Shown here piece by piece: positions 2,297-46,956 of a DNA stretch of 64,000 bases. The first letter of the stretch is position 1, and every line of letters starts with the position of its first letter. Made by a program: the position numbers and the translations under genes. The notes beneath the pieces were generated by a model, which was not told where the DNA came from, did no database searches, and worked only from the letters and a program-made list of their open reading frames with translations. Source of the stretch: Anolis carolinensis (lineage: Eukaryota); assembly GCF_035594765.1 (NCBI RefSeq), contig NW_026943818.1:2957757-3021756 (forward strand). The letters run 5' to 3'.

Positions 2297-25161
<22,865 letters not shown>

Positions 25162-36000: not shown

Positions 36001-37315
36001 CTTGGAAGCATCTGAGAGCCCCATTGTGGACTCACTTGGGTGTGGTTTAGCACAGGTCTGAGGGGTCTCTTCATAATTTGAATGAGAGAAGGTTTGCCTT
36101 GCTTTCATGGCCTAGATCTGAGTGTACTTTCAACCTCTTTGTGTTGATTCAGGGCTTTTCTGGAGAGAAAGGCAGTTCAGTTCTATCCCCAAAGTGGTCC
36201 AGAAGTTTTCCAAATCTTCCCCATATTTTCAGTCCCTTTCACAGAGAAAAAAGTGGGCCATTAGTTCAGATTTGGAGTTGGGTGGCTCTGCTTCTAAGGG
36301 TCGGATTGCTGCGGGATGTTTTCGTGAGTGGCAAAGCGGATGCCCTTCTTGCTTGTTGCAGATGAAGATTTCCTTCAACGAGTCCAGCCTGCAGACCATG
36401 TTTGAGTATCCCTCTGAGAGCTCTTTGGTGGAGGAAGAGGAGGAGGAGGAAGAGGAAGAGGAAGAAGAATATGCCACGGAGGTGGATGAGGCCCCGCTAG
36501 CGCTCTTCATCCCTCGCGCCACCGGCACCAGGCACCCAAACACCACCAACTCAGGTAGAGCTCACAGTCCTATGGAAGGAAGGGCCTGGATATTTTCTGA
36601 TATTTTCCTTGTTGACTGGAGGAATGCTGAGGCGAAGCACTTGCTGCAGGAAGGGATTAGAGCAGAGCTTTCCCAACAGTTCATCTTGGGGACCCTTGCT
36701 CTTGAGACAGGCTTCATTTTGCAACACTTTTACTTGCAAAGTGGAGGTTACACGCACACTGCAGGCGAGACACAATTTGGGCTCTGGATTAGAGTCACCA
36801 AGGGGCCCCCAGTCGCCGGAGAGAAGGCCCGGGCTAGAATCAGCCATCTCCTCTACTAGCCCCCCTCCATTTCTCCTCAATAAAGCCATTTGCCCTTTCT
36901 TTGTAGGTTTATCCAGTTACACCCCAAAGCACTCCCTGGAATTCGGCAAGTGGCAGGAGAAGCAGCAGGAGGGGGCACCTCCAAGTCCAGGGGCCTTTCC
37001 ACGAGATGCTGACCAGCTGGTCCTCCAAGACATGGTAAGGCCTGCTTCTCATCATTTTTGCAGAAGAACATGGGGTGGAGGAGAAGGAGCCAAGGGGCAC
37101 ACTTAGCAAAAAGGCTGCAGACGGTTCCCAGGTTCATCAAAGAGCAGAGGTGAGACCATGGCCGTCCAGCTGTGTGTCACTGGGAAGGCCATTCTTCCCT
37201 TCCCTGGAAGAATAAGAAAAGGCTTTATGCCTTTCCTCTTGTCTCTTTGCAGCTCACCCCAGCCGACACGGACAGCCTCTCCGACTTCAGTAGTGAACCT
37301 GCCCTTTACTTCTGA
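30058..37315 (+). CDS. TPRN: Taperin (4 exons, 715 aa)
   Basis: Exons 30058-31821 (MSSAGLPAWKQAILERKRAKL, ENPFMRLE, GNTFTVVPKRK, KKRYPTVHEIEVIGGYLSL), 36362-36554 (MKISFNE, PP1 RVxF motif; poly-E), 36907-37034 (GLSSYTPKHS), 37253-37315 (LTPA..LSDFSSEPALYF*). Phases 0/1/0 are consistent. Possible ATTAAA at 38718. Confidence 0.95.
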
Positions 37316-40163
37316 CTTCCCAGCCTCACTTGGTGCTGAGCAGAGAGACCTGCGGAGGCCTTGGGTCACTCCAGAAAAAAATGGAAGGGTTGGACCGTCT
37401 TTTCCCTTGTGAATGCGAAGGGGGGCGTCTCATACTTTCAGCGGATGCTCAGGCATCCTTTGCTTGGAGGCAGCTCACCTCTTTTCTGCCCGTTGCCTTA
37501 ATAGTTCTGTCTTCAGACCAGCTTTGAAAGCAAGTCTCCTTGATGGATGCAGGTCTGAGCGAGTTACTTCCCTGCTGCTGGTTTTGAGATTTCTCGGAAT
37601 ACAGCTACCAGCAGCATTCGAATGGGGCAGTTGAGCTGGTGCTGAGTCCAAGCAGACAAGCTGTGCTTTGATAGCTGGAAAACCCCATATTGGTGAATGT
37701 TTGGACTCCTCTTGTGCGCAAAGCCTGACGTTGCCTGCGTTGGTGAGCACAAGAAAAGGACAAGAGCGGCCCTCCGTGTCTCTGACGTGGGCATAGCCAA
37801 ACTCCAGCCCTGCCTGGGTCCCCTTACGTTCAGGTGCTGTAACAAACATGACGTCAGTGAGGGCGCAGGGGCTGGGGTAGGCCTTGTAGCAGCGTGGACC
37901 ACTTCTCTGTGGAGCTGAGTGTTTGTGGTGCATGCTTGCACACATAACACATCTGGATCCATCAGCTGTCACAGGGTTTTGGTAAAAAGGGGCTGGGAGT
38001 AGTTGCTCCTCTGGTTAGCTGGCTCTCTTTCGCCCCAATATGCCCCTCTGGGCACTGGCCAAGCTCTTGTCCAAACGCCTCCAAGTCTGTGTCTGGGGAT
38101 TAGGGATGCTGCCAGTCCTCTCCCAAAGCCATGGCCCTCAAAGCCAAGACCACTCCGCTGTTGGGTCAATCCCACTGATTCCGGTGTGGAGGATCCCGTG
38201 GGTCTCCGGCCTGTTCCCCCCTTCCCCACTTTGCAATAATGACCTCTTGCTTCCACGTTCTCCAGAAACAGCTGAAACGTTGTTGATAATATTCAGGTTG
38301 TGGAAGCAAGATTCAGTACTGTAGCCTTAGCGCCCCTTTAGCCCTCAGTGCAGGAAACTCAGTCGGCATCTATGTTCTGCCTGCCAGGGACCGACCTCGG
38401 CCGACTCCCAAAGGACCCCGATTTTTGCTCTGAAACCTACTATGTGTGTATTTCCTTCAATTAGGATCTGTCGAATCAAAGCTGATTTCTCTCTGTGGTG
38501 GGTTGTAAAACGTTCTGTATTTTTGCACTTGATAATAACAACGACAATGATAATGTATTTGCAGGAGAAGTGTGGCCAGGGAAGGGCCTCTGCCCCGCAC
38601 GCTCAGCCGGCCGCTGTTGCTGGGTCTGGCTGGAGGGGCCAAAACGGCGGCACAGGGGTCCACTTCCCCCCCTCACTTCCCCTCTTTGGATGGTTTCACT
38701 TTGTGCTTCCAAAGCTCATTAAACTACACAAGTGATTGCTTCACAACTGGCTACTTGTGGCTTTTTTGGGTGCTAAAATCCCACACGTTTAGGCTAAAGA
38801 AACCGGGCCTTAAAAGGGAAAGGACTGCTGGGCAAATCCTTCCCTCTCCTCCTTTCCAGGGTCCATATTCTGCCTTGTTTTTATCTGTTTGACCAAAAAG
38901 AACGAGAAGAAGCCTTATGGAAAACAAGGGCCCACAGGATGCAGTCATTATTCAAGCACCATTGGCCATACATTGCGCGGGAATATTGTAGGATCCAACC
39001 AACATACGGTGGGAGGGGGCTCAGAGGTGACTGATTTCGATCCCCTTCTGCAGTAGAGTCTCACTTATCCAACATAAACAGGCCGGCAGAATGTTGGACA
39101 AGCGAATATGTTGGATAATAAGGAGGCATTAAGGAAAAGCCTATTAAACATCAAATTAAGTTATGATTTTACAAATGAAGCACCAAAACATCATGTTAGA
39201 TAACAAATTTGGCAGAAAAAGTAGTTCAATATGCAGTAATGCTATGTAGTAATTACTGTATTTATGAATTTAGCACCAAAATATCACGATATATTGAAAA
39301 CATTGACTACAAAAATGCGTTGGATAATCCAGAACGTTGGATAAGCGAGTGTTGGATAAGTGAGACTCTACTGTACTTGCAAGGCCTGAAGGGCAGCTAT
39401 TCAGTCACTGCCAAGCTGTTTGCCCCCCATTCCCCAAATGGGACAAGAATCCCTGGGTTTCTGCCAGAGCCTAGCAGTGCCTTTAGCCCAGGCTTCTTCT
39501 GAAATAGCCGGCTCCGCTAATGCCGGTGATAATCAGAGCTATTTCTAAGCCATGCGTTAAGCCCTGCTATTTCAAAAGCCCCAATCCCAGGCTGGCTTTG
39601 GACTCCTGGGAAAGTGCGCTGGGGTTGCTTACATAAAGGGTGGTGTGGATCAATTGGAAATGGCAGTCATATGGATGCTCAGCCATTGGTGTTTTTTGTG
39701 GACCAGCCTGGCTCTGTTGGGGCCCATTTCCCCTTTTGACTGATGCTACTGTGGTGGTCCGTTGAACCTCAGGAGCACAAAGTGTGCAAAAGTATGTCCC
39801 ACGGAGGAGGAATGAGCAAGGCTTGCGTTGCTGCTGCTGTGGAGTCACGGTTTCCAATGCCAGGAAAAGAGATGCCACCCAAACACCAGGAAGAGCATCC
39901 CAAGGGTCAGAGCTGTTTGGAACCTTTGAAGGCCCTCAATGAACGCCATCTCTTTCCCCCTAAGAAAGAGACTCATTTCTTCACTTCTCCCACGGGGAGG
40001 GCCGGCCACTGGAGGGGAGCGTTCCGTGGCTCTGTGACCTCACAATCTGCTCCAGAATCCCTGTTGCAAGGCTCTGTCCCCCCCACCCGCTGGCCTGACC
40101 GACTGTCCCTTAGCCGCAGAGGCTCCTTGGAAGGCATGAGGGATCCTTAGGCGAAGGACTGCC

Positions 40164-41966
40164 ATGATGCACCTGACCTGCATAGTCTTCCTCTGCATCG
40201 CAGCTTCGTCTTCCTGTGAGTCTTGCAGCCAGCGAGCAGCTGGGCATTTCTTCTTCTTCCTTTTATTATTATCCTGCTGCTAAAAAAGAGTTAGAGCAGC
40301 TTTCCCTTTGTGATATGTGACCGGGAGGGTGCCATTGTCGACAGCCTTGGTTTGTAGTTTCCATCCTGCCTCGCTCTTTTTATCTAATCACAAGTCTCTA
40401 AATGGTTCCCACTTTCTATATTGTTAGCATTTGTTTTTATGGGCCGGTGGCAGATTACAGGGCGCCAAGACCGAAGCAAGGTGGGAAGGATACGGGACGT
40501 CTCTTGACATGGGCCCAATCCTCACTCAGAGCGGGTTCCTCTGATTCCTTTGCTTCCCAGTGGAAACCACCAAGGAAGAGAGACCCAAAGCTCAGTCTCA
40601 CGGCTCGGACCTCCGGCTGGACAGTTTCAATGAGAGCGGCGCAGAGGGCCATGGGGACGTTGTCCGGAGAGCCATCCGGAAGGTGAGCCCAGGGATCTGG
40701 CCGTTCCTTGATACATGGGCCCTCTCTGCCCAAAGAGAGTCTGGCACAGAACTCACACAACTTCTTGTCCACAGTATCCAGAAGACTCTGGAGACAGCCG
40801 TGTCGGGCATCGGCATGACTCCTTCGAAGGTAAGGCCCACCTGGCACCTGGCATTCAGATAGGAAACTTGCCTCTGTGGCTGAGATTGGTGACAGAGATC
40901 AGATCTGGCCTTTGGGTTCCTCTGGGTTCACACTCTGCACAGCTTTGGGCAGAGGAGGTCTTGTTTCCCATGGCTGTCTTCCAAACCATACAGATTCAGA
41001 GCTCCCATTTGTGGTGGTCCCAGGGGTGATTTGACCTATTTCAAACAGTGAAGGTAACCTTAACAAGTGGGCTCCCCTCCTTTGGAAGCTGTTCAGCAGA
41101 CATGGGATGGCCGAGGGCCAGGACACTTTGGTTGCTTTCGTGGTCATGCAAAGCAGCACTGAGCCATGCAGCTCCTTCCTTCCGTCCTTTCCTTCTTCCC
41201 ACCCTCCCTCCCTTTCCTTCCTTTGCTCACTCGTTTGCTCCATCCCCCTTCCTTTTTCCCTCCCTTCCTTCCTCCGCTGCCTCTTGTGTTGCAGTGCCAA
41301 TCCAAGACGACTGCCAGTGCCCGCCGACGATGTCCGAAAGCACGGTGGTGGCCCTGGTGGCCACCTTGGCTTTCCTGGCCTTCCTCCCCACTGTCCTCCT
41401 CCTGGCGGCGGTCATTTGGTTCTTGTGCTGGGTGGTGAGGACAAATAAGTAAGTCTGGGAACCCTCCCCTGCCAGAGTGGCCCTTGGGTTTGGTGTCCCC
41501 TTTCTGATCTCAGGCCTTTCCTTCTCCCTCTTGGTTCCCAGGAAGAAGGAGAAAGAGGAGAAGGCGGGCCACCCGTCGCATCCTCGGAGGCGGGCCCCTC
41601 CTGTCCCGTAAGTGGCCCAAGCCCAGGTCGGGGGGGCTCCAGGCCTTTCCTGAAGGGGGCTTGACACGGCCATTCACCCCATCCAGATATGGGGCAGTTG
41701 GGGGTCCCTTGTGTTGCCTTTCAGCCCTGCCTTTGCTTCTGGTTGCAGGCCTCCTCGCCCAGACAACAGCTTCAGGTTGTCAAGGCAGACCTACGGATAT
41801 GAGCGGATCCAGCCGGCCTCCCCGTGAGTGCCCCTTCTCTGCCCCAAGCCCTCTTTCACCCCCCACCTGCCCCGATCCTGCTCCCAACTAGGAAAATCAC
41901 ACCATGTTCTCATTTAGCCAATGACCACTTTGTCCCATGGTGCTTCACTTTCCTTAATTGTTGTTG

Positions 41967-42020
<54 letters not shown>

Positions 42021-42108
42021 TATGACACAGCAAACAAGATAGATATGCTGGATTTCATATCACAAAATCACAAGTCGAACACTTCCCAAGTGTCTAGGAC
42101 TGTGTGAT

Positions 42109-42160
<52 letters not shown>

Positions 42161-43727
42161 ATCATTTCTACCCCGCCCTTCTCACCCATCAGGGGACTCA
42201 GGGCGGCTTACAATACAACCATATACATCAGAAAAACAGTTTACATCAAATTTAAAAGTCTTTCAAATTTAAAAATTAAAATATACATTAAAAACAGCAT
42301 AATTGTACATTTAAATAAACATTTAAGGCGCTTTTCATGTCCAGGTGGGGGTCTATCAGTGAGTTATACAGTAGAGTCTCACTTATCCAACACTCGCTTA
42401 TCCAACGTTCTGGATTATCCAACGCATTTTTGTAGACAATGTTTTCAATACATCATGATATTTTGGTGCTAAATTCGTAAATACAGTAATTGCTACATAG
42501 CATTACTGTGTATTGAACTACTTTTTCTGTCAAATTTGTTGTATAACATGATGTTATGGTGCTTAATTTGTAAAATCATAACCTAATTTGATGTTTAATA
42601 GGCTTTTCCTTAATCTCTCCTTATTATCCAACATATTCACTTATCCAACGTTCTGCCGGCCCGTTTACGTTGGATAAGCGAGACTCTACTGTATATTCAT
42701 ATCGTGATTCTGCTGCTACTCATGCTCAAATGCCTGATCCCATCGCCACGTTTTTGTTCTCTTTCGGAAGGACAGGAGGGCGGGAGCCTGTCTAATTTCG
42801 TTTGGGAGGGCGTTCAATAGGCGGGGGGCCCCAAAGGCCACCCAGTCCAACCCTTCTGCCATCAAATAAGACACCATCCAAGCCCTCCCAACAGATGCCC
42901 TACAGCCTCTGCTTTAAGACCTTCAGAGAAGAAGACTTGTATCAACATACTTTCCTGTGAGGCACCAATATCCCAGCTGGGTGGACAGAAGGGGCCGAGA
43001 AGAACCTGCTATATTTCATCCTGAGCTTTTGTGGAGATTGTCTTGCTTCTTGAGAGCTCATGCTGAGATCAATGGGTCGGCCTTAAAGGTCTCTCACAGC
43101 CCTTGGCCATTCTTTGGCCAGAAACATGGCCTTGTCCTCTTTTCTCTGCCTTTGTGTCCTTCCAGGCGAGATACGCAAGGGGTCTACCTGAATGCCAGTG
43201 AGCTGCACCCCGGGCCCAGGTGAGCAAGAGCAAAGGGAGAACGGACATCCTCCTTTAAGAGGAATCTTCCCAGTCAAGTGTTTTGACTTTTGCTTCATTG
43301 CTTCCCATATTTTGACTCCAGTCCTCTTTTTCCTTGTGATTTCAGAAGCCCTCGGGAGATGACCTACCAGAACCTTAAGTTAGTGGAATCCAAGTCAGTA
43401 ACAACAAGGAACTGGGGGGCCTCTTCTTGGATGGTTGGCTGGATGGCTAAATGAATGAATATCCTAATGATTTCCTGCACCCATTTGAACTTAGACTTTA
43501 AGGCTTTATTTGGTTCCTTAGTGGGGCTCCTAATACAGCTATTGAAGTCCAAACTTCCTATTGATCTGCATTTGGGTTTTCGTAACCAGTTTGGGCTCCA
43601 GACCCTATGGAGTTAAAGTCCTGTTTTTCCTTGTGATTTCAGAAGCCAAGAGGCCAGTTACCAGAACCTGAAGCCAATGGAACCTAAGTCAGTATGAACA
43701 AGGAAGTGGGAGGCCTCTTCTTGGTTG

Positions 43728-43779
<52 letters not shown>

Positions 43780-46570
43780 TCTTGCTACTAATCTGGGAAC
43801 CACAACACCTTCAAACATGGGGCTGGGGAGGTCTAGCATTTGGGAAATGCTGTGACTGTAGGTCCCAGAATCCCCAGCAGGAGCAGTTGCTGGGAACTGT
43901 AGTCAGAAAAAGCAGAGATGGAAATGGGGGGCAGCGGTGGTGGAAAGGGCCAGCTGGGCAAACTGAAGGAAAAGCAGAAGGGCTGAGCCTCCCTTCCTTG
44001 CCTTTCCAGGACAACCGTAGAGACGGGGTACATCAGCCCTGAGCGAGTGCTGCCTCTTTCCACGTGAGTCGCTGGGAGGGAAAGGTGGCCCCTGAGCATG
44101 TGCAGAGATCGGTCCTCCGCAATTCCCCATGTCCGGGCCCCGTGACCATTTTCTCCCTCGCAACCCCTCCCTTATTTATTTATTTGTTTGTTTACTACAT
44201 TTATATCCTGCACTTCTAACCCCCAAGGGGACTCAGAGCAGCTTACAAATTAAATTTACATATAATATTATATTATTAGCATAGTACAATACTGGCAATA
44301 AATTACTATATTGTACTGTATCAATATATTGTAGTATTATTAGTAATATTACATGTAAATATATAATATATAATATATTATTAGGAGCCCCGGTGGCAAA
44401 GTGCGTTAAAGCACTGAGCTGCAGACCGAAAGGTCCCAGGTTCAATCCCTGGGAGCGGCGTGAGCAACCACTGTTAGCTCCAGCTCCTGCCAACCGAGCA
44501 GTTCAAAAACACTGGCATGACTGCGCTCCATGCAGTCATGCCAGTGGCCACATGACCTTGGAGGTGTCTACGGACAACGCCGGCTCTTCGGCTTAGAAAT
44601 GGAGATGAGCACCACACCCCAGAGTCAGACATGACTGGACTTAACATCAGGGGAAAACCTTTATCTTTAATATATTATTATATTGTATTATTAGTATTAC
44701 AGTAGATCTTACTTATCCAAGCCTCGCTTATCCAAGCCTCTGGATAATCCAAGCCATTTTTGTAGTCAATGTTTTCAATATATCGTGATATTTTGGTGCT
44801 AAATTCATAAATACAGTAATTACAACATAACATTACTGCGTATTGAACTACTTTTTCTGTCAAATTTGTTGTATAACATGATGCTTTGGTGCTTAATTTG
44901 TATAATCATAACCTAATTTGATGTTTAATAGGCTTTTCCTTAATCCCTCCTTATTATCCAAGCTTCTGCTGGCCCGTTTAGCTTGGATAAGTGATACTCT
45001 ACTGTATATCGTACTACAATATAACATTATGAATATTATATGTATATACAATGTGTTATATTATTATATATTATTGCAATATAATCCCTTGCGTCCTTCT
45101 TCTTCCAGGCCTCCTTTGGAGAAGAGGTACATGAGTGCGGAGAAGTACATGAATATCGATCACTCCCATCCAACCTCTCTGTAAGTTTGGGTTCCATTAC
45201 CCATTTTGTCCTTTTATTCAGAGCAGCAGCAAGAATTTGGGGGTTCTCCAGAACCTCTTCGTTAGAATAAGAGGCTAAAAAAAAATCTGCTGCCCAGACA
45301 ATCAGTTTTGCACTCTTCTCCCTTCCCGCAGAACTGGAAGCGGCCCAGGGACCACCATGTCGCCAACATTGTCCCCAAAAGGGTGAGTAAGGTTTCCTTG
45401 ATGGACGCAAACACCAGAAAGTACTCTAAATCCCCACCTATAACATTTCCAGAACTTCTAGTCCTCATGATGCAAAACCCTTGGGAGTTAGTGTTACAAT
45501 TTTCTGGTTGTTATGGAAAACTACCCAAAAATACAACAGAGCATCTAAAATAGAAAAACAGGATACTTATGTAGTTGAGCATTCAGCTCACAGCAAGCAG
45601 AGCATGAAGTGCCGTTGGTTGTGGCTGTAAAGAATTTAGAGCTTTTACATGCAGAGTCGTAAAAATTACAAAAGGTCTATTTACAATAAAAATAACTACA
45701 GTAGAGTCTCACTTATCCAACACTCGCTTATCCAATGTTCTGGATTATCCAACGCATTTTTGTAGTCAATGTTTTCAATATATCATGATATTTTGGTGCT
45801 AAATTCATAAATACAGTAATTACTACATATCATTACTGTGTATTGAACTACTTTTACTGTCAAATTTGTTGTATAACATGATGTTTTGGTGCTTAATTTG
45901 TAAAATCATAACTTAATTTGGTGTTTAATAGGCTTCTCCTTAATCTCTCCTTGTTATAATAATAATAATAATAATAATTTTATTTTTGTACCCCGCCACC
46001 ATCTCCCCAGAGGGACTCGGGGTGGCTTACAGATATAAAACCAACATACAATAATATCAAATACAAAAACACACAAATAAATATGTTATCCAACATATTC
46101 GCTTATCCAACGTTCTGCTGGCCCGTTTATGTTGGATAAGTGAGACTCTACTGTAATTACATTCCGTAATGGTTAAAGCATTGGGTCTTAGCTATTCTAA
46201 CACACATTTCTTCTAACGTTTCAAGAGAGGGAAAAATCACCAAACACTACATCTCTCCTGACACATAAGCATACGCACAGCTCACACCAAGATGCAAAAG
46301 TAGAAGTCCAAAGTAAAGGCTTGCAATAGAAAAGTATCCATTCTACACAGCCAATCTGAACAAGAGCAGAAGCAGAGCAGAGAGAAGAAATTAGATAGAT
46401 ACATTCCAACTGTCATCCAGGAGACATGGGTGAAGGGAAACCCTCAGCCTGTTCTAAAGCTAACTCTTCCTCATTGAGGACTGCAGACTTGGGCAGCGTG
46501 GGGTTGAACTCCAACACTTTCTGCTTCCCTTTCCAGGCAGAACAACCATATCTACGAAGAGATAAGATGA
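40164..46570 (+). CDS. Unrecognised type-I transmembrane tyrosine-motif adaptor, 13 exons, 293 aa
   Basis: Exons 40164-40215, 40561-40682, 40775-40829, 41295-41448, 41542-41607, 41749-41823, 43166-43219, 43346-43393, 43643-43687, 44010-44063, 45109-45180, 45332-45382, 46537-46570. All GT-AG with pyrimidine tracts; they join into an 882-nt stop-free frame; gccATG start; ATTAAA at 46646. Confidence 0.82.
43727..43780. repeat. (GATA)n microsatellite
   Basis: Direct reading; a (TATC)n tract also lies at ~5246-5300. Confidence 0.9.
44384..44669 (+). mobile_element. Sauria-type SINE (internally deleted)
   Basis: tRNA-like head ggagccccggtggc..ggttcaatccc, body cacatgaccttggaggtgtctacggacaacgccggctcttcggcttagaaatggagatgagcacc, acctttatcttta tail. 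Confidence 0.8.
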
Positions 46571-46956
46571 GAGGAGGGCAGCGCATGGATGGTCTGTCCA
46601 CACGAAGGAGAGGGCCCCGCAGGATGGGGACTGCCTCGGCTTTGCATTAAAGCATCTCTTGTTTTGTTTTTTCCCCTCCTTTACTCATATGGTGTTTGCA
46701 AATGTTATGGTTTCCATATTCCTAAGCAGAACCGGCCTGCTTTGACCTCTTAACAGTGAACACACTTTACAGCATTTCCTGCTCTTGGGAGCTTTGGGGG
46801 AGTTTGCCTGTTATCCCATACCTCTGTATGCCATTTATAGGAAGGCAGTGGCCTAAAAGGGATAATTATTCTGGTTACTTTAAAGATGTCTACAAATTCT
46901 AATGTGTTTTTTGAAATTCAGTAGATTATGTTGCCCCGTGGGGGTTGGTAGATGCC

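Follow-up and report, generated by a model that had tools for sequence, protein, structure and literature searches.

The 64,000-nucleotide (nt) stretch of the Anolis carolinensis genome analysed here (NCBI RefSeq assembly GCF_035594765.1, contig NW_026943818.1, positions 2,957,757 to 3,021,756 of the forward strand; hereafter the window) contains a real gene, annotated as LOC103281776 yet uncharacterised, whose 13 exons lie between positions 40164 and 46570. Its product, conserved across Squamata, is a single-pass membrane protein of type I with no recognisable domain. On balance, we lean towards the view that this protein acts as a phosphotyrosine scaffold and is probably the squamate counterpart of TMEM210. 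Should the scaffold reading be true, squamates would possess a family of transmembrane adaptors that has no characterised member and is undescribed by any Pfam family, and TMEM210, an orphan in mammals, would gain both an origin in evolution and an ancestral function that can be tested.

A script check of the letters of the window confirms the 13 exons, separated by 12 introns that are all of the GT-AG type, with a GTRAG donor in ten of the twelve and a pyrimidine tract at every acceptor. The joined coding sequence of 882 nt encodes 293 amino acids (aa) and has zero internal stops. Exon 1 ends in phase 1, and exons 5 to 12 (66, 75, 54, 48, 45, 54, 72 and 51 nt) are all of phase 2 and multiples of three in length. 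Exon boundaries, phases and lengths are exactly those given in the preliminary description of this DNA, which had presented the gene as hidden. Exon 4, searched against a library of 1.84 billion proteins, returned one protein that is 100% identical across the exon at the same residue positions; later searches used database proteins retrieved in this way. By local comparison, the spliced product matches in every letter the Anolis carolinensis protein XP_008122163.2 ("uncharacterized protein LOC103281776 isoform X1"), and the locus record for this isoform coincides with the window. Because the same model is already held by NCBI, with four isoforms (X1, 293 aa, XP_008122163.2; X2, 288 aa; X3, 275 aa; X4, 270 aa), the gene is not hidden, merely uncharacterised. 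A literature search found no publication for the LOC identifiers or for SRR6291270. The features of the gene, all on the forward strand, are as follows.

40164..40215 (+), exon 1: ATG and signal peptide, ending in phase 1; AlphaFold helix 2-17.
40561..40682 (+), exon 2: variable acidic ectodomain, closing with the conserved basic site VRRAIRK.
40775..40829 (+), exon 3: conserved ectodomain piece YPEDS...GHR.xS.
41295..41448 (+), exon 4: CxC (second Cys invariant), transmembrane helix and stop-transfer; the part that weakly matches Pfam TMEM210.
41542..41607 (+), exon 5: juxtamembrane KKKEKEEK and the beginning of the proline motif RRxxPPVPPPRP.
41749..41823 (+), exon 6: completes the proline motif and carries GYERI (YxxL/I), which lizards have and snakes have lost.
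43166..43219 (+), exon 7: tyrosine exon YL(N/S)ASELxPGP.
43346..43393 (+), exon 8: first YQNL exon; alternative donor after 43378 (X2, X4).
43643..43687 (+), exon 9: second YQNL exon, a tandem copy of exon 8.
44010..44063 (+), exon 10: tyrosine exon EYIxP, a cassette omitted in X3 and X4.
45109..45180 (+), exon 11: PPLEK-Y...KYMNID (in other squamates, the KYxNxE motif).
45332..45382 (+), exon 12: linker rich in Ser, Pro and Thr.
46537..46570 (+), exon 13: conserved C-terminus NHIYEEIR and stop codon; 34 nt.
46646..46651 (+), candidate poly(A) signal ATTAAA, the first past the stop codon.

Library searches with the Anolis protein, followed by alignment of the matches, identified homologues only in Squamata, in at least 15 species that include a gecko. 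Among lizards these are Anolis sagrei (78% identity), Sceloporus, Phrynosoma, Phrynocephalus, Pogona, Varanus, Rhineura, the cordylid Hemicordylus, Podarcis and the gecko Sphaerodactylus; among snakes, Pantherophis, Thamnophis, Notechis, Naja, Erythrolamprus and Vipera. Every one of them is labelled "uncharacterized" or "hypothetical". No homologue outside Squamata appeared in the library searches, which work through a word-based prefilter and are therefore not proof of absence. The gene had been proposed to be lineage-restricted, and its homologues are indeed squamate only, but the lineage, comprising all Squamata sampled, is large and not narrow.

When the proteins of Sceloporus, Pantherophis and Varanus are mapped exactly, across splice junctions, to their own loci, the same exon plan as in Anolis emerges: phases 0, 1, 0 and 1, then the run of symmetric phase-2 exons, and a final exon of 34 nt. 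Local blastn limits the similarity between Anolis and Sceloporus DNA to the exons and approximately 136 nt upstream of the ATG. This shared plan, together with the confinement of similarity to exons, places the gene model far beyond chance. Pairwise ratios of nonsynonymous to synonymous substitution (dN/dS) of 0.2-0.55 point to a gene that is fast-evolving yet constrained. The conserved frame that the preliminary description anticipated in related lizards is thereby found in orthologues that have kept the phases and show dN/dS values below 1. It is accordingly very improbable that the open frame is a chance or decaying one, or an annotation artefact: its product is identical to an NCBI model with four isoforms, its exon phases are kept in four species, dN/dS lies below 1, and an orthologue is seen as a spliced transcript, on an intron-free Logan contig of 1051 nt.

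The approximately 136-nt upstream block is likely to be core promoter or 5' untranslated region. Within it, at 40033-40044 (+) and about 120 nt upstream of the ATG, lies the palindrome TGTGACCTCACA (TGTGAnnTCACA), which is invariant in Anolis, Sceloporus, Pantherophis and Phrynocephalus. It resembles cAMP response element (CRE)/AP-1 sites or nuclear-receptor half-sites. Individual models of the family also depart from the common plan. That of Sceloporus carries a 59-aa insertion through a 5'-extended exon 3 (L003:11123-11354), and in that of Varanus an extended N-terminus replaces the signal-peptide exon (L005:10001-10641); both are probably annotation artefacts. In a squamate transcript contig (L001:860-930), the conserved ending EHIYEEVN is shifted by one frame relative to the main open reading frame and follows a repetitive GSP-rich stretch, a shift that reflects either an isoform or an assembly slip.

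The architecture of the protein agrees with what had been read from the Anolis letters: a signal-peptide-like N-terminus, one transmembrane segment and ten tyrosines. A hydropathy scan shows the hydrophobic N-terminus and a single transmembrane segment at approximately residues 94-121, and AlphaFold2, run on a 15-sequence alignment, predicts just two helices, 2-17 (signal peptide) and 91-136 (transmembrane). Everywhere else the predicted local distance difference test score (pLDDT) falls below 50, which in this model fits a disordered tail. Alignment of the family shows which parts are conserved. The signal peptide and a variable acidic stretch are followed by an invariant basic site, V-R-R-A-V-R-K/R, and directly after it, at the junction of exons 2 and 3 (VRRAVRK|YPED), by Y-P-E-D and then G-H-R-x-x-S. 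One ectodomain Cys is invariant, namely C85, the second Cys of CxC; in snakes the motif reads GxC. Beyond it, the transmembrane helix, a Lys/Glu-rich juxtamembrane stretch and RRxxPPVPPPRP(E) are conserved. Towards its cytoplasmic end the transmembrane helix has only one Cys nearby, and the gecko and cordylid proteins lack it.

The cytoplasmic tail presents one tyrosine per exon, with five or six such motifs conserved (GYERL, in lizards only, YLSxSELxPGPR, YQN(V/L), EYIxP and KYxNxE), and ends with the C-terminal NHIYEEV/I. Invariant or nearly so across the whole protein are the basic site, C85, the transmembrane helix, PPVPPPRP, Y182, Y200, Y231, Y249 and H-I-Y-E-E. The tyrosines Y182, Y200, Y231, Y249 and Y289 are conserved across squamates in YQN, KYxNxE and HIYEEV/I contexts, an agreement with SH2 ligands at the level of motifs. 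Among the motifs originally stressed, PPVPPPRP, YQN and YEEI/V are conserved in this way, whereas others are not general among squamates: YLN (elsewhere YLS), the second YQN and the YMN of KYMNID (both Anolis-lineage duplications), CxC, and the NES sequon. At the end of exon 7 (43204-43219), most squamates have E-L-N-P-G-P, recalling the end of the viral 2A motif (D-V/I-E-x-N-P-G-P). A 2A-like skipping site was rejected, since A. carolinensis reads HPGP and no D-V/I precedes the motif; ribosome skipping of this type at exon 7 is, by these residues, unlikely.

These motifs suggest how the protein may work. Src-family SH2 domains prefer the phosphorylated sequence YEEI/V as their ligand, and pYxN binds the SH2 domains of the Grb2 family; PxxPxR is an SH3 ligand, and PPVPPPRP fits SH3 ligands of both class I and class II. 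In scaffolds of the p130Cas type, bipartite sites dock and open a Src-family kinase. Once the signal peptide is removed, the ectodomain would probably be cut at the basic site RRAVR-K/R just before YPED, a putative cleavage site because it fits the rules for proprotein convertases ((R/K)-Xn-(R/K), n = 0, 2 or 4). Such a cut would leave a stub of approximately 30 residues, whose invariant membrane-near Cys could form a disulfide dimer. The disordered cytoplasmic tail would then serve as the phosphotyrosine scaffold: by analogy, the SH3 ligand PPVPPPRP and the phosphorylated C-terminal HIYEEV/I, as a Src-family SH2 ligand, might jointly dock and open a Src-family kinase, and the docked kinase would phosphorylate the other conserved tyrosines, in YQN, KYxNxE (Grb2-type YxN), YLSxSEL and EYIxP, with SH2 adaptors recruited as a result. 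With each docking site on its own symmetric phase-2 exon, exon skipping would alter the set of sites. p130Cas and Sin likewise pair an SH3 ligand with a pYxxV/I SH2 ligand and are able to dock and activate Src-family kinases, but they are cytosolic scaffolds with SH3 and substrate domains, and the likeness to them is a presumed one of mechanism only.

The same tyrosines can be read in another manner. GYERL, YQNV/L, KYVNV and YEEV all fit the YxxΦ consensus, such that the protein might be a non-signalling membrane protein, for example of germ-cell or epithelial surfaces in the manner of mammalian TMEM210, with its tyrosines serving as sorting or endocytosis signals and its proline motif making trafficking or cytoskeletal contacts. 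In keeping with this alternative, the positional counterpart in mouse, Tmem210, a gene of four exons, is testis-enriched and dispensable for male fertility, the knockout being fertile (PMC9226692). However, conservation of Asn at position +2 in YQN and KYxNxE, and of the acidic pair in HIYEEV/I, goes further than YxxΦ requires, and seven separate tyrosine sites together with an SH3 ligand exceed usual sorting needs. We consider this alternative improbable; if it were nevertheless the case that this is an ordinary surface protein with sorting signals, the outcome would be the routine annotation of an uncharacterised LOC gene.

Structural features of the transmembrane-adaptor class are present, namely a single transmembrane helix, a short ectodomain and a domain-less disordered tail (from hydropathy, AlphaFold and Pfam). 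Assigning an adaptor-like architecture to the protein was thus reasonable: it is single-pass and domain-less, and its disordered tail carries conserved SH3-type proline and tyrosine motifs, the latter one per symmetric exon. With SIT1 and TRAT1, which are disulfide-linked adaptors, it shares the short ectodomain, a membrane-near Cys, the single helix and tyrosine motifs in the tail, YxN among them, but there is no sequence relation, the squamate protein has a cleavable signal peptide and a longer pro-region, and its dimerisation is only putative. SCIMP and PAG1/Cbp are also domain-less transmembrane proteins that combine a proline-rich SH3 ligand for a Src-family kinase with phosphotyrosine sites for Grb2-type and other SH2 proteins; unlike them, the squamate protein has no palmitoylation CxxC and no match to their Pfam families, and its gene structure and genomic location differ. 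LAT and LAT2 resemble it in the several YxN sites on a disordered tail and in their many small exons, yet their ectodomain is nearly nil, they are without a signal peptide but with a juxtamembrane CxxC, and they show no sequence match. This juxtamembrane CxxC palmitoylation motif, of the LAT, LAT2, PAG1 and LIME1 type, is not present in the family alignment.

That the sequence matches no adaptor recognised in the preliminary description is borne out by profile searches. Pfam scans of the full-length proteins of all family members gave no match to LAT, LAT2, PAG, LAX, LIME1 or SCIMP, and Pfam scans of single exons gave no match. The lone match to the SIT family lies on the transmembrane segment of one Sceloporus protein and, at E 0.21 and 12.6 bits versus a cutoff of 27.6 bits, is at noise level. 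A profile search of the PDB likewise returned only noise (sodium channel beta-2 at E 0.7).

A different relationship is suggested by genomic position. In Sceloporus, the order is SSNA1(-) ANAPC2(+) gene(+) TUBB4B(+) CMI2B-like(-). Four squamates, Sceloporus, Pantherophis, Varanus and Phrynocephalus, have ANAPC2 as the immediate 5' neighbour of the gene, in the same orientation; in Pantherophis, TPRN follows at a greater distance on that side. The human order at 9q34.3 is LRRC26-TMEM210-ANAPC2-SSNA1-TPRN, where TMEM210 is the next gene downstream of ANAPC2 and has the same orientation. On the opposite strand this becomes TPRN-SSNA1-ANAPC2-TMEM210, as in squamates, and TUBB4B as the other neighbour is explained by a single inversion of the block that lies between LRRC26 and TUBB4B. 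In cattle, TMEM210 is reported from the same 500-kb interval as SSNA1, TUBB4B, LRRC26 and GRIN1.

TMEM210 (PF15195) is also the Pfam family matched by the largest number of members: seven match it at 13-18 bits, the best at 18.2 bits (E 0.0035). In all six of the matches checked, the register is the same: profile position 3 is taken by the first Cys of CxC, and the match continues through the transmembrane helix. Together, the weak PF15195 matches and, independently of them, the gene order indicate that the gene is quite probably the squamate counterpart of TMEM210. The mammalian protein, of about 147 aa, shares with it a signal peptide, a single transmembrane helix and the slot downstream of ANAPC2, besides the weak in-register matches over the Cys motif and transmembrane segment. 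In contrast, the squamate protein is twice as long and has an extra pro-region, the YPED piece and eight extra small exons with the proline and tyrosine motifs, such that mammalian TMEM210 would be a much shortened form of the squamate gene.

Several points weigh against a scaffold that corresponds to TMEM210. All PF15195 matches lie below the 27-bit gathering threshold, and the Anolis protein itself has no match; the matches span only CxC and the transmembrane segment, which is hydrophobic, and since the members are mutually related they are not independent. No gene of the family is named TMEM210 by NCBI. In Anolis itself, the upstream neighbour is TPRN (interval 36860-40163) and not ANAPC2, the SSNA1-ANAPC2 block being absent between them. 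With respect to function, most of the tyrosine motifs also fit YxxΦ endocytic signals, the proposed scaffold role is drawn from motif-level agreement with SH2 and SH3 specificities, and the basic-site cleavage and disulfide dimerisation are steps that we purely infer.

In Anolis, a 796-aa TPRN with Phostensin domains lies on one side of the gene and a tubulin, followed by a CMI2B/FAM166A-like gene, on the other. In the four other squamates, ANAPC2, with or without SSNA1, is interposed between TPRN and the gene. A 37-codon similarity connects positions 39511-39621 of the window with the start of the Sceloporus locus (L003:1-130), beyond the 3' end of SSNA1. Since TPRN adjoins the gene and this similarity lies past SSNA1, the SSNA1-ANAPC2 block appears to have been removed at this point in the Anolis lineage; local tblastn found no exon remnants of ANAPC2 or SSNA1 inside the window.

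The gene order also bears on whether the protein could instead be a squamate-born leukocyte transmembrane adaptor, of the functional class of LAT, SIT and SCIMP, that is unrelated to TMEM210 and was inserted or retained beside ANAPC2. In favour of this, the protein is built like a transmembrane adaptor and carries the corresponding motifs, the library searches detected homologues in squamates only, and the TMEM210 matches are below threshold. Yet in four lineages the gene occupies precisely the position of TMEM210, next to ANAPC2 on its 3' side and in the same orientation, TMEM210 is the commonest weak Pfam match and stands in register, and no known adaptor family matches beyond the single SIT hit. 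An origin of this kind is therefore rather unlikely, and the label "immune-type" or leukocyte, under which the gene was first described, is unsupported.

Returning to the scaffold related to TMEM210, a more specific proposal can be formulated, albeit one that we hold only tentatively and regard as somewhat doubtful. Squamates may have kept the full-length ancestral amniote membrane scaffold, comprising a convertase-processed, Cys-dimerised type I stub and a tail whose SH3 ligand and C-terminal pYEEV/I jointly capture and activate a Src-family kinase. Every additional SH2 docking site would have a symmetric cassette exon to itself, with alternative splicing setting the signalling output, and mammalian TMEM210 would be the stripped-down remnant of this scaffold.

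The anticipated splicing of symmetric docking exons has a counterpart in the annotation: isoforms that lack individual tyrosine exons are annotated for Anolis, Pantherophis, Notechis, Rhineura, Vipera and Hemicordylus. In A. carolinensis, isoform X2 loses KLVES through an exon 8 donor that lies 15 nt further upstream (GT at 43379-43380), isoform X3 skips exon 10, and isoform X4 combines the skipping of exon 10 with the alternative exon 8 donor. The YQN exon and its intron flanks have in addition been tandemly duplicated with a period of 297 nt, giving 13 exons in Anolis versus 12. This duplication is common to A. carolinensis and A. sagrei and is not found in Sceloporus; the YQN exon is single in other squamates. 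One docking site per symmetric exon, combined with species-specific exon duplication and skipping, constitutes a clean natural case in which to study the evolution of docking-site repertoires.

The two YQN exons also vary in spacing, from YQNL-x11-YQNL in X1 and YQNL-x6-YQNL in X2 to YQNL-x12-YQNM in A. sagrei. The alternative donor of X2 (43346-43687) hence cuts the distance of 11 residues to 6, the canonical spacing of an immunoreceptor tyrosine-based activation motif (ITAM), in A. carolinensis only. A canonical ITAM (YxxL/I-x6-8-YxxL/I) was considered and rejected, as the arrangement is not conserved and all squamates beyond Anolis have one YQN exon.

Repeats account for further features of the window. 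An interspersed repeat of approximately 320 nt, starting AGTAGAGTCTCACTTATCCAA..., occurs in four copies, at 39054-39377 (-), 42376-42695 (+), 44700-45006 (+) and 45699-46165 (+), that is, upstream of the gene and in introns 6, 10 and 12. Long (ATT)n and (GATA)n microsatellites occupy introns 6 and 9. Away from the gene, at 13407-17012 (-), lies an open Ty3/gypsy-type pol frame of 1201 aa with protease, reverse transcriptase, RNase H, integrase and Tf2-type SH3 regions.

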